Shown one piece after another: positions 15,522-54,100 of a DNA stretch of 64,000 bases. The stretch comes from Cycas panzhihuaensis. Lineage: Eukaryota > Plantae > Cycadophyta. The DNA is taken from positions 157,239,741 to 157,303,740 of the forward strand of contig CM041465.1 of the NCBI GenBank assembly GCA_023213395.1, given 5' to 3'. How positions within the stretch are numbered: the stretch's first letter is position 1; every line of letters starts with the position of its first letter. The translations under genes and the position numbers were made by a program. Under the pieces are notes generated by a model. That model worked only from the letters and a program-made list of their open reading frames with translations, was not told the origin of the DNA and searched no databases.

Positions 15522-18500
15522 GTCATGGTAGAACCTTCATGGACATCACAACCATAGGTAAGTGAACATGTGATTATTCCTTTCTTAGCTTATTTTAGTG
15601 TAGTTTAGAGTAGTTATTTTATAAGCATATGCCCTTGTTTGCCTGTTGATCTAGTATATAAGTATGTTTATGCTTTGTCCATGATGATTTCAACCATGGT
15701 CGATGGCCTTATTATTGTCCATTAGAGCTTAATTAGTTAAGAACAACCTCTTAACACCTCAATAAGACACATCTTGTCTTTCTTTTTCTCTGATTATGTC
15801 TTTCCTCTTCTTAACCTATTCTTTTGGTCCTTTTTTCATGTAATTTGATCTATTTTTTATTAATTTTCTCTCATCCTACTATGATTGTTGCTTGTCCCAC
15901 CCTATTTTTGTCATACCATGCTACTTTTTAGTTTTCTTTACTGATTTTTTCATAGAACTATCAAAAAATCTAGAGGTTTATGGTACTACAAAGAATTTTC
16001 ATGGTATTGTACTAAACTTTGCAATATGATATTTTTCACTTGCAATTTTTTTACGCTTATGTTTGGTTGTGCATTTATTACACCAAGATATGGGCCCTCC
16101 TTATGGTTTTATCAAAGCCATGGTTTCAATCCCATAGATTTTGAAGAAACCATGGGTAAAATCCCATGGTGGGAAATGACAAGATTAGACAAATAATGGC
16201 CCATGGTTTCATCAAAACCATGGGTTGGCCATGGGTTTTAGTGAAACCATGGGCTATTAATTGCCTAATCTTATCATTTCCCATCAAAATCATGGTATTT
16301 TGCCCATGGTTTTAGCCCATGGTTTCTCCCAAATCTATGGGCTTAAAACCATGGACCCAACGCTTCACTCTTATCCATTTATGCACCTATTTTCATGAAA
16401 ATAGGAGGTTATACTACAAGTTCATTATTTTATCATTATGCTACCAAATTTTCATCAGATTGCTTAAGTTCATCTAATCTTTCTCATTAGCTTCCACTCT
16501 TGGCTTCAAGTTTGATCACTAGAAGTTGTTAAAGCATTCATTGACTAGAGAAAATAGTCATTAACATCCCTCCATCTCTCTAAATGGGACAATCCCCCCT
16601 CCAACAATTCTAGGATTTTAATCTATTTTTCTAATATTTTATTTATTTTTCTTTCTAGCATTGATTTGCCTTTATTTCTACTTGTTCATTGTGTTATTTT
16701 AGCTTCTTTTATTTTTTATGTTTTACCTCCTTTGCTTATTAGTGTCTTGTAATTGAATGGGGCCCTAGTATTATTTGTTTTGGATCTAAAAGGGATGGAC
16801 AAGTTCACAAATTTTTAGGCCTATTTCACACTTACTTTTAACTCCTTTAAATATTTGGTTTACTTAGCTTGTTTGATATCTTTTTTGCATCTATTTCTTA
16901 CGATAGTGTTGTATATCATTAACTTGGATAGTTGGTGGAGATCTACAGGTTTTATTATAGATTTTTTAGTGCATAGAGTAGCTTGGGGATCCTCCTTCCT
17001 TCTTCCTCTTTCCATCCTTATTCCTATTAAAGTTTAGTGCCTTTTACAAAGTCATTATACTGCCAAAATTCCACTAGAGAGGCCACATAAAAGGTGAGCA
17101 TCAAAGTTTGTTTAAATACTATTTTGAGTATTTTCACTCTTTAAATAAACTTTTTTTCATCATAACCTCATCTAGCAAGTAGAAATGTTGCTAGATTTTT
17201 ACTAGAGATCTTCTTTCTAATATCATATGTTACAGAGATAAAAGTCTATTTTGAAAGGGCTACAATTGGTGATTTGGTGCATCTTACTAAGTACTTTTCA
17301 CAAACACCACCTTTCTAGCTTTATTTACAAAAAGGAAAAACTCATATGTTGTCATTTTGACTTGTTAGTCTTGCATTGAAAAGAGGAACAATAGGAAAAG
17401 TTGGTTTTCTTGTATGCTTGGAGCATTACTTGTTACTCTTCTTCCCCTTTACTCATAATATTTCACTTTGGAAAGGCAAAGATAAAAGAATAAGAGAAAA
17501 AAGGGCTAAAAAATAATCTTTTTCTTTTTCTTTTTACTTTGCATATTATATTTGCATCTTTGCTTTCAACATGTGCTTTCTTGAAGGCCCAATAAAGAAG
17601 AGGTTTGTACTTGTTATGAGTCCTTAAATTCATGGGGTAACATTTTCTTTTGATTAGCTAGGTTATTATGTTATTTGCGTATAACTAAATATTACATGTT
17701 AGTTGCATTAGATGTGTGACTTGTTTACTTCCTGAATTTCTTTTAAGGTCTAGGGTACTTCTTTCCATTATAGAGGGGGGTAATTTTCTTTCTACTCAAG
17801 TGTCATTACCGTATGAGAGGCATTGTCTTATGCCTTTAGGTATCATGCCTCTAATCTATGTTTCAAATAAACACCCAAAGGGTACCTACCCTTGCCATGT
17901 GTTAATGTGTAGTATATGGATAGTTGAGTGAGCATCATCCCTCCTATTAAGAGTGATGACCTCTACCTTTTTCACCCTCTTAGAGTTTGAGATTTATTAG
18001 AATTAGATGCAGGCACTACTAGGCCACTCTTATACTTATGTAAGAGCCATCACCAGTATTAACAAGTCCCCATTGACTTATCTATGAGTGGATTTATCTT
18101 ATAATATTTATTCACTCTAATCTCTTACTTAAGGTAGTCATTTCCCTAATTCCATAAATTAAGTTTGTTGCTTTTAGATTGGGTAGGAGTTTGGGTTAAG
18201 ATAGGTCAGTTATCTTGAAGAGTTTCATTGTATAGGATAGACACATAGTAACATAAGAGTTATAGGCATTCGTGCTTGATTGAGCCCCTTACATTATGAA
18301 GGCCTTTCTATATGCTAATTGGTCCTTCTAGGGATATCACTTATGGTTTGATTGATTTCATCTTAAGCTATTATTAGTTAGGTTTTAGTTTATATTCTTT
18401 GGTTGATGCATGTTTGTTTAATATACCTCCTTGCATTGCACTCTCTTTTTCATTTGTTAGTTAGTTGCTGTTGACATTTATTTTCATTTTATTATCATAT

Positions 18501-18716
18501 TTTCTAGACACGTTGCATACATCTGCATATTACCCTTAGCCTAGCTAGTCAAGAACAGTGTTAAGCATCCATATATCCTCATACAAGAGATGCATAAGTG
18601 CCCTTATAGGGGATGTATATCTGTACCCTTCCCTGCTCGAGTCCCTCTCACCCTTCAAGCCCATTTTAGGGTTGTGATTTGCATGTCCTCTACCCTTGCT
18701 CGTCAGCATTCACTAA
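15522..18716 (+). repeat. 5' LTR (~3.2 kb), with an apparent ~0.7-kb deletion just after its start
   Basis: Begins gtcatggtagaacc like 30253, then jumps to sequence matching 30931; collinear with the 3' copy after that. Confidence 0.75.
16117..16355. repeat. ~235-bp imperfect palindrome rich in CCATGG inside the LTR
   Basis: 16117-16222 is the reverse complement of ~16230-16355 (e.g. gggaaatgacaagattag / ctaatcttatcatttccc). Confidence 0.85.
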
Positions 18717-28230: not shown

Positions 28231-31200
28231 ATAGTGGGCACCACAACAAATAAAATATAGGTCAAATATGCAAATAAAAATATATCTACACTTAGAGAAC
28301 ATAAAAAATGCAATAAGAAGCCCTAATTTAATGAATTTGTCACAAAAAATGTCAAAATTTATGTGTTGTTAGTCATCCCACAAAGTTTTTTATCTGACCC
28401 ATGATAGAATAAAGCATCTTGCTAAGATTCTTGTAGTACAACTTGGTTGTTCATGGTACCACAAAGAACCATAACCTATATTGCAAGGTTTTGCGTGACC
28501 CCCAAAAGGATATATTTTCATTAAAAAATTTTAAAATTTAACTTTTGGGTTTAAATTTTATCTATTAGAAATGATTGGGGTGAAATTTTTCCTTAGTCTA
28601 GCCTAAAATAGAGCTCTTATTGGACTTCATTTAATTGGAAAATGAAAATTGAGGACATTACTCTACAAACCCCTAAAATCTTTAAAAAAAAAAAAAAAAT
28701 CTAAAAAATAGAAAGGTTTGGCCTATCAAGTCCAAAGCCTAGGCATCCATCTCAATGTTCTAGATCCAACATGTCTAGTTGAGTGAGATTCTAATGGTAC
28801 ATTTGTCTATTATGAGCCTGGGAAGTTTGTTAACCAAAGTGGGTTTTAAGTTCTTAGAATTTTTTTATAACTTTCATAAATGAAAATGAAATCAACCAAA
28901 AACCTATTTTTATAAAGGCCCAAACCTAATTTCAAGATCTCTATTTTCATCTTATCTATTTCATTACGACCCTAATTTTCTAAGTTTTTAATATGTACAG
29001 TCAATGATACCATTGTTATAGTAGTTACTTTTTGAATTGTACTTTACAATATCGTTCATGTCTATTGGTCCAATAATTAATAAGTTTATTAATCACTCTA
29101 TTATCATTCATTTATTACCTAGGGATAACTATCTCTTGGCATGCTAGTGTTTACAGTCCACATGACCATTTTGGAACATTGGATTCATATTTTTAAGTCT
29201 TATAGACCTTTCTTTTATTAAGCATTGCATAACCCTTTTTTTAATGCACTTTTACTCAATAAGAGCCCTTAGGTAACCCCTCCTATATATAGTCATATTT
29301 ATAGTTAAAAGTCTTAATGTTATGAAACTATCTCAACTACATAGTTAGCTTATGAGTTTCCCATGCCATCTAGTGTTCACCCTCTATAGGACATTTATAC
29401 TCATCATTTTTATTTTGAAAGGTTTTGTGTGTGACTGAGTTGTTTTACAAACTAACTATTTTCTCAGTGTATAGCCTAAGCTCCCAACAAATCTATCTCA
29501 TAATATGCTTCTTAATAGGAGTCCCACTTAATCCCTATTATAGTAGATGACCCAACTTGTCATGATTGCCATTTCAAAGGCCTCTTTTTCAATTATGTCC
29601 TATATGAAATCTCTTAAAGATTATGTGTACAAACTACCTTATTCTCCCTATAGTTTGATGCTCATCACTAGATTCTCAAGTTTTTTATATATTCATTCTA
29701 TTAAAATAGTCTATCATATATTGATTTACTTAGTGTCCTATGAGTTAGATCATCATCACAACACCTTTTCATATTGAAAAATAGGAAAAAAATGCATGTA
29801 TATACACCCCCCAAAAAATATAATACAAAAAAAAAATTATGAATTTATGTATATATATATATATATATATATTCCTCTCACCACATTCTTAAAATCTGGT
29901 ACAAGTTGCATGTCATCTTTGTTCCCACCTATAATTTACAATTTGGGTCTAGACATATGGGTCGTTCAGGACCTACTAATCTAATTTTTGGGTTAATCAT
30001 GGCCTTAGTCATGATTGAAACCTACTTGACATTTTAAAAGCTATAAAATAAACTATAAAAACTTACCACGATAATGATACTAAGCTACTCATGGGGTCCA
30101 TATTTGACTTAATTATATAGTCAAAATAAGCATTTAAACTTGATATCTAGTGGCATTCATTGATTCCTAGTCCATCCTCCTTATTTATTGACTTATCGCC
30201 AAGTTGTTATTACATGTCCCCATGGTATTGGTCATCTATATAGATGGGGGTAGTCATGGGAACCCTAGCCCCTCTATTGTAGCTTGGACTATTTGAGACC
30301 ATTTAAGACATCTCTTGATTTGCTTTGGGATCTATTCACTTAGAGTAACTACCAAGCATAATTGAGTATATTGTTAACATTAAGGCATTAACTAATGTAC
30401 GACATGTTTAGTGTGGCCCTATCTTATCACTTTCTAACTCTTAATTAATTGTCTTCTAACTTATTAAGATCTATCAAGTCTATTACCCTTAACTACACAC
30501 TTTTACTAACCATGCTAAGTCACTCTTATCCCAGTTTTCTATAGTTTCAATCTAACACATTTGATGGGGACATAACACTGAGATCAATTACTTAGTTGCT
30601 CTTATTATTGAGTGTCATCTACCATAAGTAGGTGATTCCCTTTAGGACTATCAACCTTACCAATGAAACTAGGCCTACAGGTCAACCTCCTTATTGCCAC
30701 CTTCAAGAAGCACTAAAGAGGTTAAACTATGGTAACTATGGTCTTTATAGTTTAGGGCAACATTCTCTAAACACATGTTAAGGAGGCTAACCTATGGTAG
30801 ACTACCTTTCCTTTTGTTTTTTATAAGCTCATTGTTAGTCTAACTGGGGTATTATTGATAGCATTCATCATCTTATAACCATCATCTAAAGAGGTTATAT
30901 TACCAATGAGGCAAGTATTTCTCACAATCTGGGAACTTCATGGACATCAAATTCATAGATAAGTGAAGGTATGTATTTATTCATTTCTTAGTTTAATTTA
31001 GTAATTATTTTACAAGCACATGCCCTTTTTTTCCTATTGATCTATTGGTTGAGTATGTTTATGCTTTGTTGATAATGATTTCAACCATGGTTAATGGCCT
31101 TATTATTATCCATTTGATCTTAATGAGTTGATAACATCTCCTTAGAACCTCAACAGGACATGTCCCACCATTCTTTTGCTTTATTTATATATTTCCTCTT

Positions 31201-32255
31201 CTAAACTTGTTCTTTTAATCCCTTTTCATCTAATTTAATCTATTTTTCATTCATTTTCTCTCATCACATTATGATTGTTGCTTGTCCTACCATATTTTTT
31301 GCCATATTGCACTAATTTTTTTTTTTTTACATTCATTTTTACACAAAACTATAGAAAAAACTGAGATTTATAATACCACGATGATTCTTCATGGTACCAC
31401 ACCAAACTTTGCAATATGACTTTTTTCGCTTGTAAATTTTTTTAGGCCCATATTTGGCTACATATTTATGGTGTTAAGATGTGAGCCCTCTTTAGGGATT
31501 CATCAAAACCATGGTCTAACCATGAGTTTTGATGAAACCATGGGCCATTAATTTTCTAGTCTTGTCATTTCCCATCAAAAGCATGGGATTTTACCCATGG
31601 TTTTGGCCCATGGTTTCTTCTAAATCTATGGGCCTAAAACCATAGGCCCAATGCTTCACCCCTATCTATTTACACCCTCTCTTTTTATTAAAAGGAGGCC
31701 ATATTGCAAGTTGATTAAGTTGTTTTTATGTTTTTGAATTTTTATCAAATTATTTATGTTCATCTAACCTTCCTCATTGGCTTCTACTCTTGGCTTTAAA
31801 TCTAATCACTGAACACTATTTTAGCATTTGTTGGCTAGAAAAGATAATCATTAGCATCTCTCCATCTCTCAAAATGGAGCAATCCCCCCCCCCCAACAAA
31901 TTTAGGATTTTCATCCATTTTTTCAAGATTTTACTTATTTCTCTTTCTAGCTTTGAATTACCTTTGTTTATACTTATTTGTTGTGTTATTTTGGCTTTCT
32001 TTCTTTTATATGTTTCACCTCCTTTATTTGTTTATATCTTGTAGCTAAATGAGGGCCTAGTATTATTTATTTGGGCTTCAAAAGAGGTGGATAAGTTTAC
32101 CATTTCTAAGGCCCATTTCACACTTACTTCTACTTGCTTTAAATGTTTGGTTTACTTACCTTATTTGATAGTTTTTTTCTATTTATTCCCTATAATAGTG
32201 TTATATATCACTAACTCATGTAGGTAGTGAAGCTCTATAAGATTTATTATGGGTT

Positions 32256-32694
32256 TGTTGGAGTTAATCATCATCACTCCACTCCTATCTTCCAACTAGG
32301 ATTGTACACCTCATCAACCTCATTTTACACGTGGGTGCTCAACATGTGTAGGTAAGTTAAGTTAAGTTTAACTTTGATTTATGTTAATTTGAGTTAGTTT
32401 CATTTGAGTTAAGTTAGCATTATTTTATTGTTAATTTAAATTTCAGGGGTTGAGGAGTTTCCCTCCTCCCCCAAAATTATAAATATTGAGGGGTGTGTAA
32501 CCCTCATGTCTTTAGACACTGCCCTCATTTGGGAAATTTGTAATGCTCACTTCTCACAATATGGCTTAAATACAATGCTTTCATGGTTTATGCTACATTA
32601 CAACATTGATGTATTGAAAATTTGTATTGATATATTGATCTATTGAAGTTTATTCTATGTTCTGCCCTATTCTCCTGCAATTATATTTCCAACA
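32256..32694 (+). repeat. 5' LTR of the cargo element
   Basis: TGTTGG...CCAACA, followed by the PBS. Confidence 0.95.
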
Positions 32695-33947
32695 TTTGGT
32701 ATCAAAACACACGATTACTGATCTATGAAGTTTTTGTGAAGAAGAAAAGAGATCTACTGACATTTGAGGCAGATTTACTCATAAGCAAAATACTGGTTAT
32801 ATTTATTTTCTATAAATTTTTTTAGCAAGTTTCATATATTTTTCATCAAGATTTATTTATTATTAAGTTATATTTGACAAGTAACAAAGATATTTCAGAT
32901 TTTTCTTCAGATTTGTGCAGATTTATGAAGGAGATCAGTAACAAACTACATATTATTCAAGTTTTCTTCATATTTGTGATATACTTTCTTAGATCTACAT
33001 TTTCATCAAATATTTGGTATTTTTCAAGCAAATTTCTGTCTATTTATCCTTTTTTTTTTATAGATTTATGCAGGATTGTAGTTGCATATAATATTTACTC
33101 AAGTTTTTTCTCAAATTTGAGCTATATTTCTTCAAGATCTGCCTTATATTTTTTAAATCTATTATACTTACATCAGATTTGCAATATTTAGCTTAAGATC
33201 TACAATATTTAACAAGTTTTCTTTAAGATCTATATTTTTACTTCAGATTTGCTAAAGTTTTCTTCAAATCTGAGTTATTTTTTCAAGATCTGCGTATTTT
33301 ATTAAGCATTTTACCATTTTCTACAATATTTGGTTTAGATCTGTTTATTTTAGTTATTATTTTAACATTTTCTGGCATATTTATTTTAGATCTACAACAT
33401 TTAGTACAGATCTGTTATATTTCATTTTAGATTTATATTTTTCATCATATATTTGACCATATTTTTAAGTTTTGTTTACAGATCTGCATTTTTTTGAAGT
33501 ACATACAATAGATCTATCTATTGGAGAATGCATTTGAAAGTTTGAATAGATTATCTATAGCTACATTTCCAGGTTCATCATTTTTTTTTTCAGATTTAAA
33601 CATTTTTTTCTGATATATCTACTTCATATATTTGAAATTTTTTAAATACAAATACATGTATTTCATTTGTTTGATATTTTTTTTTTTATTAAAATATTTA
33701 AAATTTTCTGGTTCATTTGTGTTCCATTGAATTAATAGAAAAAAACTCAACATTATTTTCATATTCTCTTTGTATAAATATATGATTTATTGAAATATTA
33801 CATCCTTTATAAAAAAGGGGGAAATACAATAACTAGTTACATATCGTTTATTAGGTCTTACCTTGGAATGGCAAGCTAAAATTGCCTCTTCAGAATAAAA
33901 GTAAAAGATTTCTGCAAGAAACCATGCCTCAATATCAGTAGGTTGAT

Positions 33948-34104
33948 CAAGCCTCTAATAAAAATATTATAAGTATAAACATTAAGTGAAAGCCTTTCCT
34001 TCAGCATGTGATTATAGTATCTCTTAGCTATATTAATCCTACCATTTCTCAATAAAACATTAAAAATTATTGTATGCCAAAATAGTGTGCCTCACTCCTA
34101 ACTG
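33948..34104 (-). pseudogene. Captured fragment of a P-class PPR gene
   Basis: QLGVRHTILAYNNF/NVLLRNGRINIAKRYYNHMLKERLSLNVYTYNIFIRGL (one frameshift), about 1.3 canonical 35-aa PPR motifs. Confidence 0.85.
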
Positions 34105-34180
34105 ACCCCTTCTTTGCGTAGACATTTAAAAAATGAATGCCACTTTGGCAAACTATTCTCTCTTCCTTGATGGTCAACAA

Positions 34181-34236
34181 GCCATATGTTCTCATCATCA
34201 TTGTCCACAAGAAAAAGTTTGTTCAGGCATCTTGTC
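34181..34236 (-). pseudogene. Captured short fragment of a PLS-class PPR gene
   Basis: DKMPEQ/FFLWTMMMRTYG (one frameshift), resembling the FDKMPERNVFSWTAMIxxY junction of PLS PPRs. Short, so less certain. Confidence 0.6.
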
Positions 34237-34500
34237 ACCAAGTTCTTCAGTTTTGATCACATACTCTGCAACAGTGTCCCTGAAATCTATTGGCTTTGTC
34301 GGCCAACAATGCATGTTTCTATATTTAGCGGGGAAAGTTATTGAAGATAACATATCTCCCCAGCCCAACTATTGGTCTTCAAAAAATGTAGGCTGACCAT
34401 ATCCCTAGTTTGAATCCAGGCCTAATTTTGTTGCATTCGTTGGTTGCTTAACGTACTCTTTCTTCTCTTTTAGATGAAGTTGGGAGAATTCCCTGACAAC
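34237..34500 (-). pseudogene. Captured fragment of a 2-oxoglutarate/Fe(II) dioxygenase (DIOX_N region, SRG1-like)
   Basis: VVREFSQLHLKEKKEYVKQP...*GYGQPTFFEDQ*LGWGDMLSSITFPAKYRNMHCWPTKPIDFRDTVAEYVIKTEELG. Confidence 0.92.
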
Positions 34501-34710
34501 TCTTCTCGTTGCTATCTTTCCAATTGCTCCCTCTCGTGCTGTAACTTTTCTAGATCTCTGCAATCACCCTAGTTAAGTGTCTTTTCTTGAGCTTTCAGAA
34601 TCATGTTAGTAAACTGACTCCTCAGCAAAGTGGCCTGAAGAACTTTATCTAGGGAGACCTATCTCTCAGAGCATCTTCTACATCTTAGTGTCTCCTATGT
34701 CTTATGCTCT
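34501..34710 (-). pseudogene. Captured fragment of a BET bromodomain transcription factor (GTE8/9/10 type, C-terminal coiled-coil region)
   Basis: SER*VSLDKVLQATLLRSQFTNMILKAQEKTLN*GDCRDLEKLQHEREQLER*QREE versus the recalled family consensus ERQVSPDKLYRAALLKNRFADTILKAREKTLxQGDKGDPEKLRREREELERQQREE. Confidence 0.88.
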
Positions 34711-35053
34711 CAGCATATCCACTAAAAAAAATTTTGTCACTTGCATCTTTAATGCCTGAGGGTACGTGATTAAGGGCTATTTTAGTGCTAGATAAAGCAT
34801 GATGGATATTTTTAGGTAAATTCTTTGTATCCCTAAATGCACTGATGGCCACGAGACCTTTATAATCTAACTTAGAGAGAGTTGAGCTTATATTCTATGC
34901 AATTGCATGAGGATCCACTCCATTAGGAACTGGGCAATTCTCTATATCCCACCATACAGATATCTTTGCGTTGGAAAAATCCTCATACTGACATTCTCAT
35001 ACTGCACGACGATCACATATGAGCAATCTTTGCATTGTACTTGCCATTGCCAT
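34711..35053 (-). pseudogene. Captured fragment of a NYN-domain (Limkain-b1/MARF1-like) ribonuclease, N-terminal half
   Basis: [111 protein letters not shown]. Confidence 0.95.
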
Positions 35054-35149
35054 TACTAGTTACTGGTGTTATTGCAGAGGAAATATCAATGATGCAGCAA
35101 TAATTACATTGCTGTGGAAGAACCAGAACAAACAAGGGTTAGATTTACA

Positions 35150-35465
35150 CGCGGGAGGAGGAGGACGATGGCGACGATCTTTGCACTATTATATTTATTT
35201 ATAGTCACTCAGTTTCTCTCTAAACAGCGTCCACGCTCCTTTTTTTAATATTTTTTTTATTATTCTTTTATATTTTTAACATAAATTTATAAGTATATAT
35301 GAACTATCTTAAGTTGCTAGGTAGATCAATTATTTTTATTAAATATCGATCAGCCTAGAGCTTTGATTGATCACCATATGAGTCGTTTTTGCGATTTGCA
35401 TGGATTCGGCTGTGCACTACGCCATGGGGTGTGGCAGATAGCGCACTATTGGTGACATCAGTGCC
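35150..35465 (-). promoter_or_regulatory. Putative antisense Pol II promoter of the cargo cassette
   Basis: TATAAATA on the minus strand at 35196-35203, followed ~35 nt later by a pyrimidine patch (tcctcctcctccc). Local cluster of retained CpGs at 35150-35235 and 35383-35443. Confidence 0.55.
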
Positions 35466-36964
35466 ATTTTTTAAAATTCAAACATTTCATTTTTTTATTT
35501 TATAAGGTTTTAAAATAATTTAATTTTACTGTATAAACTTTTGAATTCTGAGGTTTTAAGGATATAGTCCTCTTTTCTTTCAGCCCTCATTTATATTCAT
35601 ATTTACATGACCATAACGCATCATTAAATGGGCTAACAAACCCTTTATAAACTTTTTTCTTTTTATTTTTTTAAATTTTTTATTTTTACATAGAGTTACT
35701 GGCAAATTTTTGCCATAACTTCTGATTGCGCCATCAGTTTCTAACAAAATCAATTTCATTGCATCATAAATTTTTAGTATATCAATTTCAACTAATCATA
35801 TGACCAATTTGGTGTTAGTTTAACCCCGTTTCGGTGGATTTAAAGTCAAGCAGTCATATTTTGAGTATTTTTTAACTTTTTTACAAAATCACTTTTTGAA
35901 CTGATTATATTTTTCTGCCAGGAGATTATTTTCTACTTGGATCTATTCTACAATGATCTACGTTCAACGAAATTCATTATCCACTTTTTATTTTATTTTT
36001 TAGAATCTATTTTGATTATTATTTTAATCATCAAAGGTGCCACTTTAGTGGTTTTTAGCATTTTTCTTAACATTTTACCATAAAGGTACTTGTTACCATT
36101 TTCATTATAACTTCTATGTTTTGTATCAAAATTTAGTTCTATCAGTTTCGTTCAAAAGATGACTCACACCCCTTCGAATTGACATAGTTTTTTATAAGAT
36201 TTGAAGTGATTTTATTGATTTTCAAAAGCATCAAAGTTGAGGTATTTAATTACCTCAAACCTGCCATAATTACACATTTTGTGTATAATATTTCTCAAAA
36301 TTTTTAATTGAAAATATATTAAGTAGCACTCTAAGATAAATATAACCTTTTTACATTAATTTATAAAGTTTTATTAATATTTTTATAAGTTTTTGAGCTT
36401 CCTACTCTTATTAGGCCTAAAAAATATGCCTATATCTTGGATCATCAAAATTTGACTTATAGGAACTTGTTTTCAAAACGGTTAATTCCATTGGATTCAT
36501 ATTTTATTAATATTCATACTGGTGAAGTTTCATATTCTTCTGACATTGTTTAGTATATTATTAAAGTAGTCAAACTTGAGGTTGTCCTTTAACGCTTCTT
36601 TTAAAAAGTTTCTTCATACTCCTTATCTTTCAAAGTAAAATATATATATATTTCATTTTTTTATCATTATATATTATCATTAAGGCTAAGGATTTATTGC
36701 ATTAAGAATTTATATTTATTCATTTAAAGAAAATCCAAAGGTTAAGGTCTTATTTCAGATTTGTATCGTTAAAAGGATATTAGTATATATTTTTAAAGTT
36801 GCTTCTATATTCATTATTTCCTTATTGCATTTAGTTCATTTATTTTTAAAAGGCATTACATTTCTTTTGAAAAGTATATTTGACATCATATAAGTTTAGT
36901 CACATATTGACTTTATTTAATTTAGTAAAAGCATACATTTTATGTACTAAAGTTTTTTGATAAA

Positions 36965-37675
36965 ATGACACAATTTCCTATATTCAATAGGCATAATTTT
37001 TCATTATGGTACAAGACTATGCAAGACTATTTTATTGAACATGATCTTCTAAAATATTTGTAATATGAATGTGATCTAAGTTTTAAAGAAAATTTTAGAA
37101 AAGATAATGAAGTTTTAGGTTTATTATTTTGCATTATAAATGATGATATTTTTTCAAAGGTTTGTGAATTAACTACTTCTAAATCAATTTGGGATGTATT
37201 GATTTCCACTTATGGGGGAGATACCCTCCATGTATTTGATGATATTTTTGATGAACATGTGAGATAGGTGATAGAACAGGTGAATCATAATGATAACAAC
37301 CATGAAGATTCAGATCAAATGTAGGACCAACTTACTACATAAGTACTTGATCCTCCATTTGAGGGGGAGAATGAATCATATGATATGACAAAGAATTAAC
37401 CTGATGATATGACAGTTGTTCATAGCATAAAAACTACAAAAGATAAAGTTCAAGTTTAAAGTTATTGTAATGCTTCAGTTGATAAAGTTAAAGTTGTAGC
37501 TATTCTTTTTTGTATAAATCAAGCATCATTTACTTACAATTTTTTTACATCATTCCATGGTAAAGAGACATATGTAACTATAACGATGAGAAGAGTTGAT
37601 AAATATCAGATTTTTAAAGTTTTTTTCAAGTACAAGTTTCATAAGTTCAAAGAGAAGATACAAGTGTTCATGATG
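36965..37675 (+). pseudogene. gag: Truncated Copia gag (N-terminal ~90 aa) continuing in frame into an acidic tail
   Basis: MTQFPIFNRHNFSLWYKTMQDYFIEHDLLKYL*...KDNEVLGLLFCIINDDIFSKVCELTTSKSIWDVLISTYGGD. The frame is broken only by TAA/TAG codons consistent with CAA/CAG deamination. Confidence 0.8.
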
Positions 37676-37692
37676 ACCATTAAGGAGGAGAA

Positions 37693-38132
37693 TGTTGGAG
37701 TTAATCATCATCACTTCACTCCCACCTTCCAACCAATATTGTACACTTCATAAACCTCATTTTACACATGTGGGTGCTCAATATGTGTAGGTAAGTTAAG
37801 GTAAGTTTAACTTTGATTTATGTTAATTTGAGTTAGTTTTATTTGAGTTAAGTTAGCATTATTTTATTGTTAATTTAAATTTCAGGAGTTGAAGAGATTC
37901 CTTCTCCCCCAAAATTATAAATATTGAGGGGTGTGCAACCTTAGTGTCTTTAGACATCGCCCTTATTTGGGAAATTTGTAATGCTCACTTCTCACAATAT
38001 GGCTTAAATACAATGCTTTCATGGTTTATGCTATATTGTAACATTGATGTATTGAAGATTTGTATTGATTTATTGATCTATTGAAGTTTATTTTATGTTA
38101 TGCCCTGTTCTCTTACAATTATATTTCCAACT
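37693..38132 (+). repeat. 3' LTR of the cargo element
   Basis: Direct repeat of 32256-32694, preceded by the PPT. Confidence 0.95.
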
Positions 38133-40703
38133 AGGTTTTGGAGTGTGTAGAGAAGCTTAGTGATCCTCCTTCCTCCTCCCTCTTTCCATCCTTATTCTTA
38201 TTAAAGTTCATTGCCTATTATATAATCATTATACTTCTAAAATTCCACTGAAAAAACCACATGAAAGTTTAGTATCAAAGTTTGTTTAAACATTATTTTA
38301 AGTATTCTCACTTTTTAGATAAACTTCTTTAATTATAACCTAATTTGGTAAGTAGAAATGTTATTAGATTTTTCTTATAATTTTTGTTTCTAATATCACA
38401 TATTGGCCTAATTTATGTTGAGTCTCACTGGCAATTTAGAGAGCTAAAAGTCTACTTTGAGAAGGGTTAAAATTAGTAATTTGGCATATCTTATTAGGAA
38501 TTTTTCATAAACCCATCATTCTAGCTTTGTTTACAATAAAAAAATATTAATAAATTATAATTTTGACTTGTTAATCTTGCTTTAAAAAGAGGAACAATAG
38601 GAAAAGTTAGTTTGCTTTTCTTCCTCCTTGCTCATAGGATTTTATTTTGAAATGGCAAAGAGAAAGAAGGGTCAAAAAGAATCTTTTTACTTTTTGCTTT
38701 ACATATTGTATTTGCATCTTTACTTTTGGCATGTGCTTTCCTAAAGGCCTAATGAAGAAGAGATTTGTACTTATTATGAGTCCTTAAATTTGCGGGGTGA
38801 TATTTTATTTTGATTAGCTAGTTTATTTTGTTATTTACATACAACTATAGATTGCATGATAGTTATATTAGGTGTGTGAGTTGTTTGCTTCTTTAGTTTT
38901 TTTTTAAGGTGTAAGGTCCTTCTTTCCACTAAAGAGGGGAGATAGTTTTTCTTCTACCTAAGTGCTGATATCAAATGAGAGAGACTATCTTGTACCTTTA
39001 GGTGCCAAGTCTCTAATTCATATTCTAAACAAATAGTTTAAGGGTGCTTATCCTTACCACGTGTTAATGCATGGGGTATGGATAATTAAGTAAACTTCAT
39101 CCCTCTTATTGAGAGTGGTGCCCTTTATCTTTTTCACCTTAGAGCTTGAGATTTATTAGAATCAAGTGTGAGCACTACCAAGCCACTCTTGCACTCATGT
39201 GAGAGTTATAACCAGTATTAACGAGTGCTCACTAACTTATCCACGAATGGATCTATCCTATGGTCTTTATTTCTTTAGACCACTTACTCTAAGTAGCCCT
39301 TTCCCTAATTTTTTAGGTTGAATCTATTACTTTTAGGTCAAGTAGAAGTTTGGGTTAAGATAGTTCAGTTAGCTTAGGGGGTTTAGTTGTATATTATAGG
39401 TAGATAATAACATAAGAGTTATAGGTATTCTTGCTTAATCAACCCCCTTACATTTTGAGGGCCTTTTTGTATACTAATTGATCCTTCTAAGGATACTAAT
39501 TATGGTTTTATTAATTTCATATTAAGCTATTCTTAGTTGGATTTTAGTTCACATTTTTTTATTGACACATATTTATCTTATCTACCTACTTGCATTGTCC
39601 TCTCGCTTTTATTTTTTAGTTAGTTGTAGTTAGCATTTATTTTCTTTCATTACCACCTTTTTCTAGTATGTTACCCTTATCCTAACTAGTCAAACACAGT
39701 GTTAAGTATCCCTATATTTGTGTATAAGAGTTATATGACCACCCCCACATGGGTCATATGTTTGTGTGCTTTCCCACTCAAGTACCCCTCGTCCTCGAGG
39801 CCTATTTTAAAGTCATGATTTACATGTCCTCTCCTCTTACTCATCCATATTTACTACTCAAATCAATACTCTAATTAGGTAAAAGTGAGAAGGATTATAA
39901 GTTTTAAAGTGAGATTTAGAGGGTAGAGAGGCATTGGTGAGTTATAATTCTTTGAAAACTTTTGTGAGTGAATAATAGTGAATTTCAAGAGAATTTTTAA
40001 TCGATCAAGAGTTTGTAGGCTATGGTTATATAGATCTATAACCATATTATAAAGAGAACAAAAATTTAATAAGCTTTAATTAGGTTTTATATGGGTAAAA
40101 TACTAATAAGTGAGGATTTAATTAGAGTGTTTTTTGAAGGGGATAAGATCCAAGAGGAAAACTGATCCAATCAGTGAGAATAAGTTATGGGTTATAGATT
40201 TATTAATAGAACATAACTAGGGTGAGAAAGTAGAGTGATTTTTTTATCAATTTTTATGAATGGTAAAATGTTAGTTTAGGTCATTCGTAAAAACAAATGG
40301 CCATTTGGAAAAATAAGATATTATTTATAAAAATATAGGGCCATTTATAAAAAAAATAAGAGTGTAATTTTAATTTTTTTTTAATAAGATTATTTTCTTA
40401 TGAGAGAAAACTTTAAAAGATAAAGAAAGTATAAAATATTTTTTTTTTACAAAAATAAATGAGATTAAACTAATTAAAATTGACAAAATAGGGTGTCATT
40501 TGTTGCATGTAATATCCAATTATATTAGATATTATCCCTAACCCATTTCATACTCTCTCAATATTTTATGAATATTATATTGTAGTTACCTTAACATGTG
40601 TGCTATTTAGGAAATATTCTAGCATATAAAGGTTGACCTAGAGGGTTCTCCACATGAGGTGAGGGATTTTATAAATATATACTATTAGATAATGTGATAA
40701 TAA

Positions 40704-43490
40704 TGTTTTGGAAGCAAAAAATCTTGATAGGTTGGCAGCACAGTTCTCCCCCCCCCCCCTTGCCTCCTCCCTACAAAGAGAGAGTTTGAGGGTGGTAACT
40801 CATGACCCAAAAAGTTAGCACTATAAAACATACTAAATTGTAAAGAGAATCGGGGTCGTTCATTGAAAATACCCCATATTTGATAGTTAAGATTTATGCC
40901 TTGTATAACTCTATTATATAGCCTAATTTAGGATATTTTTTATGTTATGTTGATGGTATTCGATGTATTGGATGTACTGTATTAAGAAGAGGTAGCTGGT
41001 TGTTATTACTGCCAGCATTCTGCTACAGATTATATACATTTCTCTATTCTTAGATAATAAAGATCGATACCTTTCCTGTGTGGATGTTTCCATAGTACAC
41101 TACTAGGGTTTTACCATTACCACATTATATTTTTTGTATATATGATGCTTTGGCTTTCTAATTCATTTATTATATTATCTCTAATTTAAGAACTTGCATA
41201 TTAAATTTCAGTTTTAATTGTTATAATTAGTTACAAAATAGTTTAGATCTTGGTGGTTATTTCTGGTTATTGGGACCTAGTTTTCTTAATAAGTGGTATC
41301 AGAGCTATTTTTATTTTTACAACGAGTTTGTGAAGGTTTTAGTGTCATGTTTTTCTATACCAAATAGTAAAATTGATGAATGCAAAGTTTGAAGTGGAGA
41401 AATTCAATGGCAAGAATAATTTCAAGTTATGGAAGCTAGAAGCATATGATGTTATGGTATAAAAGGGATTGTACAGAGCTCTTGTAGGCAAACCGAAGAA
41501 ACCCATAGGGATGGATGAATGGCATAGTTGAGTACATGAACAGGACACTCTTAGAAAGAGTGAGAAGCATGTTAAGTAATATAGGAGTGGAACAAGGCTT
41601 ATAAGTAGAAGTTATTTAGACAGCTTGTTATTTAGTGAATGGGTCACTATCACTTGCAATTGATTACAAAATTCTTAAAGAGGTACAAATTGAATATCCA
41701 TGTAACTATTTAAATTTGAAAGTTTTTAGTTGTGATGCTTATGCCTTAATTAATAAAAGTCAACATTTAAAGTTAGACCCAAAATCCAAGAGATGTATCT
41801 TTGTTGATTATGGTGATAGAGATGGTGTGAAGGGATACAAGTTATGGAATCCTACTACCTATAAAATCACTATTAACAAAGATGTTGTGTTTGATGAATC
41901 TCTCTTTCTAAAAGTAGATAGTATAGAAGTTGGATTGAAACAGGAGCAGAAAGCCAAACATTAATAGGTCAAGCTTAAGACCCAACCATCTTTAGAAATG
42001 AAAATATAGGAAGAGCTTTCTGAAGATAAATCTATAGCAGATTTATAGAAGTATGTGGATACTCCTCCAAAAAAGGTTAGAAAATCTATATGAGTCAGTC
42101 ATCTACTTGACAAGTACAAACCTTCTATTTCAATTACTTTAGTTTCTAATGATGATGAGCCTACATGCTATCAGGAAGTAGTAGATAATATCCATAATGA
42201 GAAGTAGAAGAGGGTTATGTAACAAGAAATAGATGCTTTAAAGAAAAATAATTTATACGACTTGGTAGAACTTCTACATAGCAAGAAGAATATTGATTAC
42301 AAATGGGTTGTCAAGAAAAAAATAAATGTTGATAGAAAGGTTAATAAATACAAGGCAAGATTGGTGGCTAAAGGCTTTATACAAAAAGCAGGTATTGATT
42401 TTCATGAGATTTTTTCACTAGTTGTTAAACTTGTTTCAATTTAGGCTCTATTAGCATTCGTAGCTTCTCTTGATTTGGAGTTTGAGTAGTTAGATATAAA
42501 AATAGCTTTTCTACATGGAGATTTAGATAAGGAGATTTATATAGATCAATCAGAAGGGTTTGTATAGGATGGTAGAAAAAGACTTATTTGTAGGCTTAGG
42601 AAATCATTATATGGCCTGAGGTAATCACTTAGGAAATTGTACAAAAAGTTTGATACCTTCATAGAGAGCCAAAATTTTAAAAGAAATGAGTATAATAACT
42701 GTGTTTACATTAAATTCTTAGACAATGCCTTATTCATTATATTGGTATTATATGTTAATGACATGTTGGTTGTAAGCAAGAGTATGGCAGAAATCAACAA
42801 GTTAAAGGCTCATTTGGATATGACTTTTGATATGAAGGATCTAGGAGCTACAAAATAAATCTTAGGCATGGAGATAGATAGAGATAGGAAAAATGGTAAG
42901 CTATGGTTATCATAGTAGAAATATGTAGAGAAGGTGCTAACCAAATTTGGTATGGCAAATATGAAACCAGTGAGTATCTCATTGGCTTTCCATTTCAAGC
43001 TTTCTTCAAGTATGAGTCCTAGTAATAAAGAAGAAAAATATTATATATCTTGTGTATCTTATGCAAGTACAATATGAAGTTTTATATATGCCATGGTATA
43101 TACAAGACCTAACATTTCACACGTAATCAGTGTAGTTAGTAGGTTTATGGCAAATCCAGGAAAAGAACATTAGGCAGTAGTGAAATGGGTGCTTTGATAT
43201 TTAAGAGGCACGAGTAACTATTACATCATCTTTTGTGGTATAGGTAATCAGGTTTGTGGATATATTAATTTAGATTTTGTAAGATATTTAGATAAGAGAA
43301 TGTCTACTTTGAGTTATGTGTTTACTCTTACAAATGGTCTGATTAGTTGGATGTCAAAATAACATAGTACAATTGTATTATCAACTACAGAAATAAAATA
43401 TATTGTTGTGACACATGCTAGTAAAGAAGAAATCCAGTTGCAAGGTCTATTTATTGAGCTTGAAAGGAAACAGGAAAAGGTAAAGGTATA
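40704..43490 (+). mobile_element. Tork/Tnt1-like Copia fragment: 5' LTR, PBS, gag start fused to integrase, RT, partial RNase H; 3' end lost
   Basis: PBS tggtatcagagc at 41294-41305; KFEVEKFNGKNNFKLWK; MNRTLLERVRSML; KLDPKSKRCIFVDY; YKARLVAKGF; LVLYVNDML; FDMKDLG. LTR start approximate. Confidence 0.85.
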
Positions 43491-45227
43491 GGGTTGCTTA
43501 GGATGATTTTTGAGCAGTCAAGGTTGTAGTAAAAGTAGATTCATCATCAACATAGTTGGCTTCAGAGGATGGTGAGATAATTAGGCAAAAATATTTGCCA
43601 TCAAGAATTTCAGTCATAACCACAGTATTTGAAGGAGGGTGAATGGCATAGAGTTTGATTATTTGCAATTATACTCAAATCAAATCCATGAGAAACAAGG
43701 GTAGATAGGGAGAGCATGTTCATCTTCAGAGTAGGAATATATGAAACATCAATAAGGGTAAAATCTAGAAGGCCTGAGAGTTTCAAGTAAACAGTTCCAA
43801 GTCCTTCAACTAGCTGAGATGATTTGTCAGCCATGTATATAACATCATAAACTTCAGAGTTAAAATCTTAAAAGAATTAGTGATGGCAAGTCATATGTTA
43901 TGTTGCTTCAGTATCCATAATCTAGTATGAAGTATTTGAGATGGCACTGCTAGCAATTTCAAGTGGTGAAGGCAGAAGTGAATAAGCATAACCATAATAA
44001 GCCTTAATACACTTAGTGGATTTATTAATAGTATTTAATGAAGTGACCCTAGTTTTTTAAAGATGTGCATGAGCAAACTGTATTCCATCGAAAGCATCTT
44101 TGAAAGAAGTATCATCAACATTATGTACACTATAGTACTATTGATAACTTAGTAGTATGTTGGTGGCAGTTCTGTAATTTTTAGTATAATGTCCTTTTCT
44201 ATGACACCTTCGACATAAAATTATTTAATTCCTTATCCCATAAGTAGCATCAGGTTGGTTAGATTATCTCTAATTACTAGATCTGGGTCTAGGTTGATTA
44301 TTTTGGCATTGGCCTTGAGACTATTTTTGTTGGTATTGGGGAACTTATTAACGATGAGGACATTGCCCTTATTATCTACTTCTACCTCTTCCATGGGAAT
44401 TACAACCTCTGCGAGAGAATTAACCTTGATTTTTAATATAAAAAAGAACTTCTTCCACTTGAAAGCAACATTGGTCCTTAAAGTTTAGGGTCTTCAAGAT
44501 GCCACTAGATTAAAGACTTACTAATAGATTTTTATAATATTGGATACGGATACATGACTAAATCAAGAAAGTCCATGTAATGTATTGAGTCTTAAAGTCT
44601 TTATTTATGGCTTGCTTGATGGGATAAAGGAGATTAATTATCTCATTTGTGTATCCTTTCTACATTTTTAATTTGTTCATCTTCAACACTAAGTGAACAA
44701 ATTTTACGTCTAATTTAGTGTTAAAGTTCTTCTTCAGAACTTCAAAAACTTTTTATGTTATATCATGTATAGCCTCATCAATGAGGTTATCTAGGGAATA
44801 ATTAATGACAAGAAGTATCCCTACATAGATTTTATCATCATCAAGTTCCCATTGATGTTTGCTTGTAGCTTTAGTGGGAGGAGTTGGAGGAGTTCATCTA
44901 GAGGCAAGTGTGATAGTAGTGGCAGTAATATTTAGTATAAGTTGTAGGTGATCTCTCCAAAGACCTTCATACTTTACAATATTTCTAACACCAGTGAACC
45001 ACATGTCCTAATTTTCTTTCCCTTTAAGACAATTCATATTCGCTTGAACTATGAAGACATGGTATCTTTTGAGAAGGGAAGAAATGAACAAGAGACTATG
45101 AAAGTGATGGCAATAAATGACTAATCATTGTTTATAAATGGGAGGTGTAATAAAGTAGTGTAGCAAAAGGAAGAATAAAGAAGTAAGAATGATTGCTCAA
45201 AAGTAAAAGGAGTAACTTAGAGAAAAG

Positions 45228-45425
45228 TCACCAATATTTGTGACAAATATTAACCTAATGTAGCAGGAATATGAGAAACACTATCATAAAAATTGGCCAC
45301 CAATACTTATGACAAATATTAACCTGATGCAGTAGGAATATAAGAAGCACTATGGTGAAAATTGGCCACCAACACTTATGGAAAATATTAACCTAACGTA
45401 GTAGGAATATGAGAAGCACTATGAT
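45228..45425. repeat. 3 x ~69-bp tandem repeat upstream of gag (2 copies at 56160-56290 in the sister element)
   Basis: Unit caccaayayttrtgacaaatattaacctratgyagyaggaatatragaarcactat... Confidence 0.85.
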
Positions 45426-46833
45426 TGTGATTACACTATGGATCACCTTTTATAAATAAGTGATTAATATACAAGATTATAAGTCAATGTAGAAGCTGAC
45501 ATCATTAGGTGTATATAACTTTTAAACTAAAATATAAGATGTGTAATCAATCCAATAACCTCTAACTTATATCTAATGTATAGTTCAAGTTACTAAAGGG
45601 ATGCTTAGGCTTCTAATAGAATTAAATTGGCCTTCATCCATGATACTCGTAATTGTACTTGATGATGAAATCTAAGTTACAACAAAGCCCAAGCACTCCC
45701 AATCCTCATCCCATTCATCAATGAGTAGCTATATACCTCCTCCAAAGAGTGGTAAGTGCATACCCATGGCTATGATGGATATTGGACTGGGTATATGTTA
45801 ATCTTGTATTAAAGTTTCAGTTTTCTTGATTGGTTATCAAGATGATCCCTGATTGAGACACAATGGTATGGCTAATTAAACCTCACCAATATTCTAGTTA
45901 AGTCCAGACCCAACTTGAAACCCACGCCTCTCTTATGGAACAATATTTTTCCAACCAAGGTATCTCAACTTTGGCAAGTGTATGAATAGGTACAAGATGG
46001 GGAAAATGGCATACATGATGTATTCCTTTTAGGGAGAGTAAAAAGATTATCGAATTTGCATCAACGTATATATAACTGAAACTAGAGTGCTTGATTAGAG
46101 TGCTTTTGGAGTGTTTGCTTGGAGTGCTAAAATGAAATGTTAAGAAGTGAGGTAAGGGCACTAGATATTGATCTGATCCAGGTGTTTTCCACTCACTTTT
46201 ACAATGGGCTTTGAAGCCTTGGAAAAAGAAGAAATTTTCTTCACTTTTTTTTTTTAATAAAAAAGTAATCTTCACTAAAATAGTAATAACTTTCTCCAAC
46301 AATAACAAAATTGAGTACTAGTTTTTGCACTATAAACTATACTCAAATCCACATCTTTAGGAAATGGAATCAAGTCGAAGTGGGTTCTGTAAAATTTTTG
46401 GCAATCCCATAAAGTGGATAGAATATAGTTTTCTAAAATTCTTACTCAAAATAATTACTATTCACTAAAATAGTAATAACATTCTTATATGACAACGAAA
46501 TTGGGTGTTGATTTTTGCACTAAAAACTAGACTTAGAGTCACATCTTTAGTAATTAGAATTAGGTCAATTAGAGCTCTATAGAATTTTTGGTAAATCTAT
46601 AAAATTTAATAAGTTGATTTTATTTCTGTAGAAAATCTAACTTGTAAATATCTTATCAACACATGATACCATATAAAATTTCCATTATTTTTTATTACTA
46701 GGATCCTGATATGGGTAAGGTGAGAGTATACAATGATAGAGATTTTAAATAGCTCTAAATTATTTTTAAACATGAGTAGAACCTCCCCTTACAAACATTC
46801 TTCAAATGCTAGAAAATATTTAGTAGCATTTCT

Positions 46834-51125
<4,292 letters not shown>

Positions 51126-54100
51126 TTTCCCCTTGTTAAATGGACAAAAAGATATTAAAGAAAAGAAGAATGAGATATGCACAAATAGCTACCAAAGATT
51201 GGAATCCCTGGGCATTACAACTCCTTGTATTGTTCTTCTAAACCTATAAAAGAGAAAAGGAAAGCAAACAATACTAAGTATGTTATGATTAAAACTTGAA
51301 AATATTTCCAAATCTACTTTCACAATCTCCTTCACCATATGGATTATCCGTGAGAAGGAAGCGATGGCTCCATTGCAAGTACAAATGAGAAATATAAAGG
51401 AACTAAGCTTTGATATCACATGAAAGGAGGGGATCTATCCTTCATCTCTATGCACTATACACAAAGGTAAACATGGGAGTAAGAGAGACTTGAGAGAAAA
51501 ATAGTAGCTCTCACAAAATAAGGAGGTAAAAATAAGCCTCTTCCATTGAGCTTTTACCTTTATATTGAGAGAGGGAGCATTAGAGTTAGGTGAAATAAAA
51601 TTACACATAATGCACATGAAAGTGCATTTCACTTAAGTGATCCAATCTAAAGTTTACTTAAAGCCCTTTTATGAATAATCAACTAATGTAATGACCTTGT
51701 AATATTAATCTATTTCACATATAAGGCTTTCTTGAGCTTATAAACTAAGTTTTCTTTAGTTGAAATAATATAGCCAAGAGGTTGCTCCAAGAAAACCTCT
51801 TTTGTAAGCTCTCTATTAAGAAAAGTACTCTTCATATTCAATTGGTAGATTGGCCAAGTAAATTGGGTTGCTAATGACATTACTAAATAAAATATGTTTA
51901 TGTTAGTTATCGATGCAAAGGTCTCATCATAGTTGAACCCTTCTTATTATTTGAAACCTTTTACAACAAGATGATCTTTGTGATGCTCGACAGTGTTGTT
52001 TGTATGGAGTTTAGTTTTATAGAGCCATCTATAATCAATTACATTTTTCTCAGGTGATAATTATGTTAGCTCTCAAGTTTCATTTTCTAGGATGGAGTTC
52101 ATCCCTTCATCCATATCTACTTTCTATGTTTTATCTTTGATTACCTACTCAAATATGGAAGGCTTGGGAGTTTCTAGGACACATGCTGTTAGGACAAAAT
52201 TGGTGGAGTGTCTCATCTTTGATGGCCTTTTAGCAACTATAGGAGGAGAAGGAGCATCTTTTAATAATTGTTAAACCCACTTGGAAAGTTGTTGAATACT
52301 AATGGTTTCCACCTGAAGGTCATCAACTAAAATGTGTGGCATAGAGGTGCTTGCATCTGATATAGTCATTGAAGATGATGTGGCTAAAGATGAACCTAGT
52401 ATATAAGAGGATGTAGGTGTTGGTGGCTCTAGAATTGATGCAAGAGGCACTTGAGATGCATAAACATCATCTTCTACTATATACTAAAGTTTTGAGGTGT
52501 CTAGGTCCTGAGCATCTTTAGCAAAAATGACATCCCAAGTGGTGTGGGCTTAGTTCCTAACAATAATAAATACTTTATATGCTTTGCAACTAGGTACATA
52601 CCCAAGGAAGATGTACTTAAGGATCTTATTATCTAGTTTTTTTCTATTCTCCTTTGGAACAAGTTTGTTTATCATACATCTAAATATTTTTAAATGTGTA
52701 ATTGTTAGTTTAAGTCTTGTCCAAGCCTCCTCAAGAGTGATGTTTCTAACAACCATTATGGGACTCTAGTTTATGAGATAGTCAGCTATTATGATAGCAT
52801 CATCCCAAACTCTTATAGCAAGGTTAGCCCCACTCAACATAGCTTTAGCTTTATTCACTAATAATTAGTTCATTCTCTCAACTATACCATTTTGTTGAGG
52901 TATGTGAGGTGCAAAAAACTAATATTTAATGCCATGTTATTTATAGAAATTAGTGAATTGATTTAAGATATACTACCCTCCATTATCTGATTTAAGGGTC
53001 TTAATAGTTAATCCACTTCCATTTTCTATCTTAACTTGAAACTCCTTGAATTTATCAAGGGCTTCATACTTATTCCTTGAGAAGTATACTAAAACTTTCG
53101 TAGAATAATCATTTATAAAAGTCATGAAAAATAGACTACTATTGAGGGATTAAATTGGCATAGGCCCATAAATATCTCAGTGAACCAACTCCAATAGTTT
53201 AGAGACTCTCTATGCATTCTTAGATGGGAATTTTTCTATTTATTATTTTCCCATAAGGCATGCCTCACAAATACATATATTTCTCTTTATCTTGGGAAGT
53301 CCATGCATTATATGAAGCCTAGACATGAGGTTTAGACTCTACATGTTTAGGCGACCTAGGCATTGATGCCATAGTTAGTCTTTAACACTGTTTGAGGGAG
53401 CCTCCTCATCAGTAAAGGAGCATTCACCTAGTTCTTGAATAGAAGGTTGGTCCTCTACCATTATTTCCTTACCCTTGTCAAGTTGGGTACTTTGAGCCAT
53501 TGAACATGATTCTATAGGTGGATTATTTACTAGAGGAACACCATCAATCTTGTATAAGTCATTGTCTTCATGTCTTGTTGCTATAAGTTATCCAATTGTA
53601 TGAGTTATAATGGTGCAGATACCTTGACTAAAGAGGATATCCAAATTCTTCTTATCGATTTGGCTAACTAAAAGTAGATTCATTTTTATGCTTGGAACTA
53701 GGAATACATTATTAATACAATACCTTATTTTAGAGTCCTTCAAAGCTATTAAAGCCCTTCCAATTTTAGTCACATTATATATCATATTATCTCCAAATTT
53801 GACTATTTGTGTATTAATTAAATAGGTCTCTTTCAACATATCTTCTATGCTAGTCATATGGTAAGTAGCACCTGAGTCAAATATCCAAGAGTTATTATCA
53901 TGTTGAGATGATAATGCTACAAATAATAGGTTTTAAAAGGAGGTATCATAAGCATCTACCATATGGCCTCATTCTTAAGTATTGGGGTTCGTCCTTTTAT
54001 TCCTGAGTAGGAATCATTGCCTATTATGCTATTATTAGTTATGTTTAGGTCTTTGGTTCTTATTTTGTTGATAGAATTAGCCTAGTTATTTATACAATGG

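Follow-up and report, generated by a model that had tools for sequence, protein, structure and literature searches.

The 64,000-nucleotide stretch of Cycas panzhihuaensis DNA analysed here (the window; contig CM041465.1, positions 157,239,741 to 157,303,740) contains a 5.9-kb long terminal repeat (LTR) retroelement at 32256-38132, which carries, between its primer-binding site (PBS) and a remnant of its gag gene, a mosaic of host gene fragments joined head to tail and running antisense to the element. Three donor families are verified, namely an NYN-domain gene, a 2-oxoglutarate/Fe(II) dioxygenase (2OGD) and a PPR gene, and BET/GTE is a likely fourth. We favour an explanation in which the mosaic came in with the integrating element as passive cargo, with a probability that we put at roughly 0.55, and we infer that it had been acquired either by template switching of the reverse transcriptase (RT) or through host DNA that inserted into a progenitor copy. 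A sequence-only reading of the same stretch had proposed an LTR element with a head-to-tail antisense chain of host fragments between PBS and gag, and this core of the proposal is upheld by the LTR pair, the target-site duplication (TSD) and the NYN, 2OGD and PPR matches.

An LTR pair, a 5-bp TSD and a paralogous empty site identify 32256-38132 as one LTR-retroelement integration, whose parts are listed here together with the empty site:

32251-32255, no strand: left copy of the TSD, GGGTT
32256-32694, plus strand: 5′ LTR, 439 bp, with TG...CA ends
32697-32708, plus strand: PBS-like TGGTATCAAAAC, 2 nt after the 5′ LTR
32709-33840, plus strand: leader, AT-rich, with a CpG observed/expected ratio of 0.14 and degenerate tandem repeats
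36965-37264, plus strand: copia-type gag remnant, ~100 codons, with an internal stop at 37061-37063 and ending at the stop after 37264
37682-37692, plus strand: polypurine tract AAGGAGGAGAA, directly adjoining the 3′ LTR
37693-38132, plus strand: 3′ LTR, 440 bp, its final base changed to T
38133-38137, no strand: right copy of the TSD, AGGTT
About 16958-16967, no strand: paralogous empty site, where an older repeat copy (15535-18715) runs uninterrupted

The LTRs, with ends TGTTGG...CCAACA, are 92-93% identical (92.7%; 25 transitions and 7 transversions; Kimura two-parameter distance, K2P, 0.078), which amounts to a divergence since integration of 3.9% per LTR and, at assumed rates, to an age of roughly 3 million years for 1.3e-8 substitutions per site and year, or as much as ~18 million years if substitution is slower. 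The element is flanked by an older host repeat (30936-32255 and 38133-39856), to which the paralogue at 15535-18715 is 73-78% identical on both flanks, and at the position equivalent to the GGGTT/AGGTT duplication the empty site reads AGATT. The LTR pair, the TSD and the uninterrupted paralogue therefore mark a single integration of the element. Two independent LTRs that happen to enclose host DNA, which we considered separately, are ruled out by the TSD and the empty-site paralogue.

As to the class of the element, TGGTATCAAAAC departs by two G-to-A changes from what we take to be the canonical tRNA-iMet PBS of copia elements, and the gag remnant matches Retrotran_gag_2 over profile positions 35-78 of 172 (E 5.9e-6) with a score of 26.3 bits, just below the curated cut-off of 27 bits. 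Pfam searches of the internal region found neither pol nor any retroelement domain besides gag. Because it combines LTRs, PBS and polypurine tract with a long leader and a truncated gag but has no pol, the element is a non-autonomous Ty1/copia derivative in the LARD / TR-GAG-like range. The leader, among whose tandem repeats is a 51-bp unit at 33286-33393, also holds a stop-free frame of 121 codons (32826-33188, plus strand), most likely a product of repeat periodicity rather than coding.

The mosaic occupies the space directly after this leader, and each of its claimed pieces was examined by way of its stop-free stretches. Read along the minus strand, it comprises:

34711-35052, minus strand: 5′ part of an NYN-domain gene (limkain-b1/MARF1-type), from a likely start codon at 35052 to about residue 127
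34501-34710, minus strand: putative BET/GTE C-terminal fragment, recognised by eye, with 4 TAG stops
34228-34500, minus strand: internal fragment of a DOXC-type 2OGD, about residues 88-177 of ~350, with 2 TAG stops
34105-34227 (region 34236-34105), minus strand: the stretch earlier read as 'PLS-PPR' plus 'unknown 75 bp', by eye possibly PPR
33945-34073, minus strand: PPR fragment, ~1.3 P-type repeats (Pfam PPR_2)
33841-33947, minus strand: mosaic end, ~110 bp, with no donor match

The NYN piece, which is interrupted by three stops (one of them at the NYN/BET border) and one frameshift, yields a 69-aa stop-free stretch that drew 159 protein matches in a phmmer search of a 1.84-billion-protein library. 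The top full-length matches bear Pfam NYN, several of them together with DUF7625 and OHA, and in a local tblastn one such full-length protein (P0002) aligned to 34984-34733 at 75% identity over 84 aa, across one stop (E 2e-34); past the frameshift the match extends to 34711. The same 69-aa stretch had no PDB match. Another of the database proteins among the NYN matches (P0001, 409 aa) contains three consecutive NYN N-terminal segments (Pfam NYN, E 1e-61), so that in another genome this NYN 5′ region has been partially duplicated in tandem.

For the dioxygenase, the only PDB structures that aligned with 34365-34228 were those of 16 plant 2OGDs, over their residues 132-177 (best E 5e-4), whereas the same search was blank for the N-terminal half (34500-34369), which is assigned by eye; the piece claimed at 34500-34237 thus stands in its latter part. 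PPR_2 is matched with an E of 1.1e-10 by residues 7-49 of the stop-free piece 33879-34091, confirming the P-type PPR fragment. A further, separate PLS-type PPR piece had been claimed at 34236-34181, but the 34236-34105 stretch has no match in Pfam, PDB or ESM Atlas, and two PPR donors are not established; judged by eye, it might represent a further, frameshifted repeat from that PPR donor. The BET/GTE region breaks up into stop-free pieces of only 29, 18 and 13 aa, and at these lengths of 29 aa or less it gave no Pfam match, nor did the 29-aa piece find a match in PDB. Its translation resembles a C-terminal motif conserved among plant GTE proteins, and 34710-34501 is on this ground probably a BET/GTE C-terminal piece, albeit a putative one. 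The mosaic end (33841-33947) was blank in PDB and ESM Atlas; its minus strand includes a sequence like a 5′ splice site, CCAAG/GTAAGA (33866-33856), and an AATAAA (33852-33847). Together, these assignments account for three families by tool and one more by eye, so that the proposed 'at least five host genes' holds to that extent and five are not established, whereas the proposed arrangement is borne out in every verified piece: all share one strand, lie antisense to the element and abut without spacer.

The native frames of the pieces do not join, as had been noted earlier: NYN is read in frame 2 and then 0, BET in 1, 2OGD in 0 and PPR in 1. The reading path through the mosaic meets 11 stops and at least two frameshifts, with the first stop only 20 codons after the NYN ATG. 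Eight of the 11 stops are TAG, and five substitutions, at least three of them G-to-A, have altered four of 40 NYN codons that are conserved in the family. The predominance of TAG together with the G-to-A changes at NYN codons fits deamination-type (C-to-T) decay, as the sequence-only reading had surmised from the stops. Computed from the five substitutions, NYN decay comes to ~5% per non-synonymous site, close to the 3.9% divergence per LTR and thus fitting a loss of constraint around integration and not much later; in this comparison the counts are small, and captured coding DNA has more mutable CG/CHG sites than the LTR. The mosaic encodes nothing and, on the explanation that we favour, decayed together with the element. 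We also rejected a natural multidomain gene, because the pieces cover only parts of their domains and do not connect in frame.

Base composition provides a further view of what was acquired, and two more features are needed to describe it:

35064-36767, no strand: non-coding CpG-retaining block, defined by CpG positions and ratios
35198-35205, minus strand: TATA-like TATAAATA, ~150 nt upstream of the NYN ATG

In the element core, counted as both LTRs, 32696-33840, gag and 37271-37692, five CpGs are observed where 51 are expected (0.10). CpGs are retained, by comparison, from 33845 to 36767, with a left limit that coincides with that of the mosaic, and the observed/expected ratio is 0.31 within the mosaic, ~0.95 at 35055-35470 and 0.52 at 35471-36960. 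The left flank of the mosaic is CpG-free and has a GC content of 16-23%, while GC-richer DNA runs for 1.7 kb past its right end. Such CpG retention over 33845-36767 in an otherwise CpG-free element suggests that the foreign, host-derived DNA probably measures ~2.9 kb, with the mosaic as its left 1.2 kb; the cargo limit that had been drawn at 35053 is accordingly doubtful, since the CpG-retaining block continues to ~36767. Pfam, Rfam and tRNA scans of 35064-35642 and 35693-36767 returned no protein-family match, RNA family or tRNA. The most CpG-rich part lies just upstream of the NYN ATG and includes TATAAATA, which would fit a native NYN 5′ UTR and promoter carried along with the coding sequence, i.e., acquisition as DNA.

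Carriage at integration could have come about in two ways: the RT may have switched template onto co-packaged host RNAs, or host DNA may have inserted into a progenitor copy that kept transposing. Either way, the cargo would have been aboard when the element integrated and would then have decayed alongside it. Cargo in antisense orientation would be expected to survive, since any splice and polyadenylation signals of the host genes would not be read in the element's genomic RNA; with sense orientation the rule for transduced genes (PMC7264820), the antisense arrangement needs either a selection argument of this kind or a non-standard capture route.

A capture route of the latter kind can be envisaged, if only speculatively. 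We consider it unlikely that the element belongs to a family of gag-only copia derivatives in which the leader serves as a recurrent 'cargo slot' for antisense mosaics of host mRNA pieces; in such a family the RT would switch from minus-strand DNA onto co-packaged mRNAs during plus-strand synthesis and so write the complement of each mRNA into the plus strand of the element. This would explain why the pieces are antisense, co-oriented and unspaced, and why the chain stops where the last mRNA (NYN) has its 5′ end. If true, this capture route, which is undescribed in the cited literature on LTR gene capture, would be the LTR counterpart of Pack-MULEs.

Several observations weigh against carriage at integration. 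The NYN decay estimate derives from five substitutions, and its Poisson 95% range of ~2-13% is compatible with a younger insertion. At 35055-35470, the CpG ratio of ~0.95 is surprising if this DNA has resided in a silenced element for as long as the LTRs have diverged. Carriage is not demonstrated by a second copy of the element or the mosaic, as none was recovered in the window or among metagenome contigs: self-comparison of the 64 kb found no further copy of the element, a metagenome scan with the LTR start gave 0 matches, and the 22-nt TTCCAACATTTGGTATCARARC, spanning the LTR end and PBS, is present exactly in 33 metagenome contigs (L001-L033, JGI/ENA) that, in a comparison with 35643-35692 masked, have nothing else in common with the element. 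Searches for homologous proteins with the NYN, gag and PPR pieces likewise yielded no candidate within the permitted range of lengths. TTCCAACATTTGGTATCARARC is apparently the generic junction of a copia LTR with a tRNA-iMet PBS, contributed to the metagenomes by plant DNA. Finally, the mosaic is bracketed exactly by two copies of a direct repeat, as it would be by the TSD of a later insertion:

33832-33840, no strand: left copy of the 9-bp direct repeat ACTAGTTAC
35055-35063, no strand: right copy of ACTAGTTAC, 3 nt upstream (minus strand) of the NYN ATG

This repeat speaks for an alternative that we regard as possible though doubtful, in which a 1,214-bp chimeric DNA (33841-35054) entered the leader at a 9-bp staggered break after integration, the LTR element being its landing site only; the chimera itself could be a LINE-mediated retrocopy, with template switching between several mRNAs, or a patchwork filler from double-strand-break repair. 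A 9-mer shared by two zones of this size and spacing arises by chance in 1.4-1.9% of trials in this window, a figure to be read with the knowledge that the repeat was spotted post hoc. The co-oriented, spacer-free pieces also resemble RT template-switch chimeras: in L1 chimeric retrocopies, sequences are joined in one orientation and without spacers by template switching of the RT. The mosaic would share with such retrocopies a derivation from several RNAs, and it has their single orientation, absence of spacers and short direct repeat; its minus strand has the AATAAA 6 nt before the downstream repeat copy, and a LINE-type RT lies in the same window. However, no poly(A) tract is found at the minus-strand 3′ end of the mosaic, and the plant context and a chain of four to five mRNAs would be unusual for LINE chimeras; a start 2 nt before the NYN ATG is unlikely as a cDNA 5′ end, and the insertion site would have to coincide with a pre-existing compositional boundary, since the CpG-retaining DNA continues 1.7 kb rightward.

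DNA transposons were also considered as the source of a later insertion. The mosaic is like the cargo of Pack-MULEs and Helitrons in its short, abutting pieces of several unrelated genes over ~1-2 kb, and Pack-MULEs produce target duplications of 9 bp, the size of ACTAGTTAC; it differs from both in having neither terminal inverted repeats nor a 5′ TC and 3′ hairpin-CTRR. At the mosaic ends the best inverted alignment scored 21, whereas shuffled sequences averaged 19.6 and reached up to 31, no hairpin precedes the CTAG at 35057-35060 (z 0.23), and only 2 nt separate gene-derived sequence from the right repeat copy, leaving no room for a terminus. We therefore rejected a Pack-MULE, for want of terminal inverted repeats, and a Helitron, for want of a hairpin and termini, with the flanking 9-bp duplication also against the latter. 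The sequence-only reading had named occurrence in this copy only, together with Helitron, MULE or LINE termini, as the mark of a secondary insertion, and on this point the evidence is divided: the 9-bp repeat brackets the mosaic, but no terminal inverted repeat, Helitron or poly(A) terminus accompanies it. The CpG profile and the 9-bp repeat point in opposite directions as to when the cargo arrived, and we could not reconcile them.

The sequence-only reading had gone further and seen in the mosaic a serially extended, mobile array of host transcript pieces acting as RNA, either as a multi-target small interfering RNA (siRNA) or TAS-like precursor or as a host-mimic shield. Transcription from the LTR would yield RNA complementary to transcripts of four host gene families, able in principle to pair with these mRNAs, and there is a precedent in Pack-MULEs, whose captured gene fragments are known to yield small RNAs. 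We nevertheless find this proposal very improbable and its components, namely serial building, mobility and siRNA or shield function, without support: the copy is old and dead, as judged by its K2P and by a truncated gag with stops, its mosaic has the stops and frameshifts described above, and the mostly transition-type decay erodes identity to the donors at the 21-24-nt scale. Self-comparison found no long inverted repeat within the element that could form a hairpin, and nothing points to serial addition or to more than one copy. Among sequencing runs, none recorded as RNA contains the stretch, and its shares in DNA runs are small (≤0.11).

Scarcely credible, in our view, is a present-day function of the opposite strand, with 35055-35470 as a live, unmethylated promoter that has been exapted to drive a chimeric NYN-BET-2OGD-PPR transcript or gene. 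The contrast between a CpG ratio of ~0.95 just upstream of the NYN ATG and 0.10 in the element core speaks in its favour, as does the position of TATAAATA, and antisense promoters within plant LTR elements are known, e.g., for Grande gene23 (PMC7264820). Against this, the first stop follows so soon after the ATG, the later stops and frameshifts lie on the same path, the frames of the pieces do not join, RNA runs containing the stretch were not found, and TATA-like words are common in DNA of 30% GC.

The closest known relative in organisation is maize Bs1, a low-copy LTR retroelement without pol in which fragments of three transduced host genes are joined internally (PMC13317346, PMC7264820) and are reported to form a hybrid open reading frame (ORF) that is transcribed and translated (PMC13317346). 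Both elements lack pol and hold joined partial pieces of unrelated host genes in the internal region; the sense cargo fused into an expressed ORF that characterises Bs1 is, however, not found here, where the verified pieces are all antisense, the frames are unjoined, stops are many and the families number at least three and probably four. Surveys of grass genomes found captured genes in LTR elements in numbers of 672 in rice and 1,343 in sorghum (PMC3726574, PMC7264820), and in maize 425 gene-carrying LTR elements, none with fragments of more than one gene (PMC2774510). The cycad element likewise has host gene fragments inside an LTR element, but differs in holding those of several genes in one element and in antisense. 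With multi-gene chains rare (0 of 425 in maize; PMC2774510) and sense orientation usual for transduced sequences (PMC7264820), it is therefore an unusual specimen.

Gag-only and other non-autonomous LTR elements form a recognised continuum, within which TR-GAGs keep a gag ORF and have been proposed to fall into a smaller size range, one that some gag-only families exceed (PMC13570524). The element resembles LARDs and TR-GAGs in its LTRs, PBS, polypurine tract and gag-related remnant without pol, but its gag is reduced to ~100 codons with stops and half of its 5.9 kb is foreign; the TR-GAG definition does not apply, and the element is better called LARD-like or a defective derivative. Antisense extra ORFs, some with their own promoter, are also known from the LTR elements Grande, RIRE2 and Retand, where they are located after pol and before the 3′ LTR, are conserved from copy to copy and lack homologues among host genes (PMC7264820). 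The likeness is that of antisense extra sequence in a plant LTR element, whereas the cargo described here precedes gag and is plainly host-derived.

Transposable elements are nested throughout the window, and the genome has a source of LINE RT: an ORF at 12979-13353 (plus strand) encodes a LINE-type RT (RVT_1, E 2.4e-7), and a copia pol piece lies at 58493-59008 (plus strand; SH3_retrovirus, E 2e-26). An inverted duplication of ~3.4 kb pairs 43488-46838 with 58091-54695 at 80-84% identity, with further shared pieces nearby (51109-51722 / 54724-54138), and a 296-bp repeat is 95.6% identical between 54143-54438 and 61738-61443.

Gene capture by plant LTR retrotransposons is known, and what is new here is the combination of several genes, antisense orientation and a position in the leader. 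As a single decayed copy, the element is a curiosity without a demonstrated effect on its host. If, on the other hand, it is true that related elements bear different antisense mosaics at the same place, they would represent a route of gene capture and exon shuffling with a defined polarity, and would offer a concrete system in which to study how RT captures host RNA by switching template.

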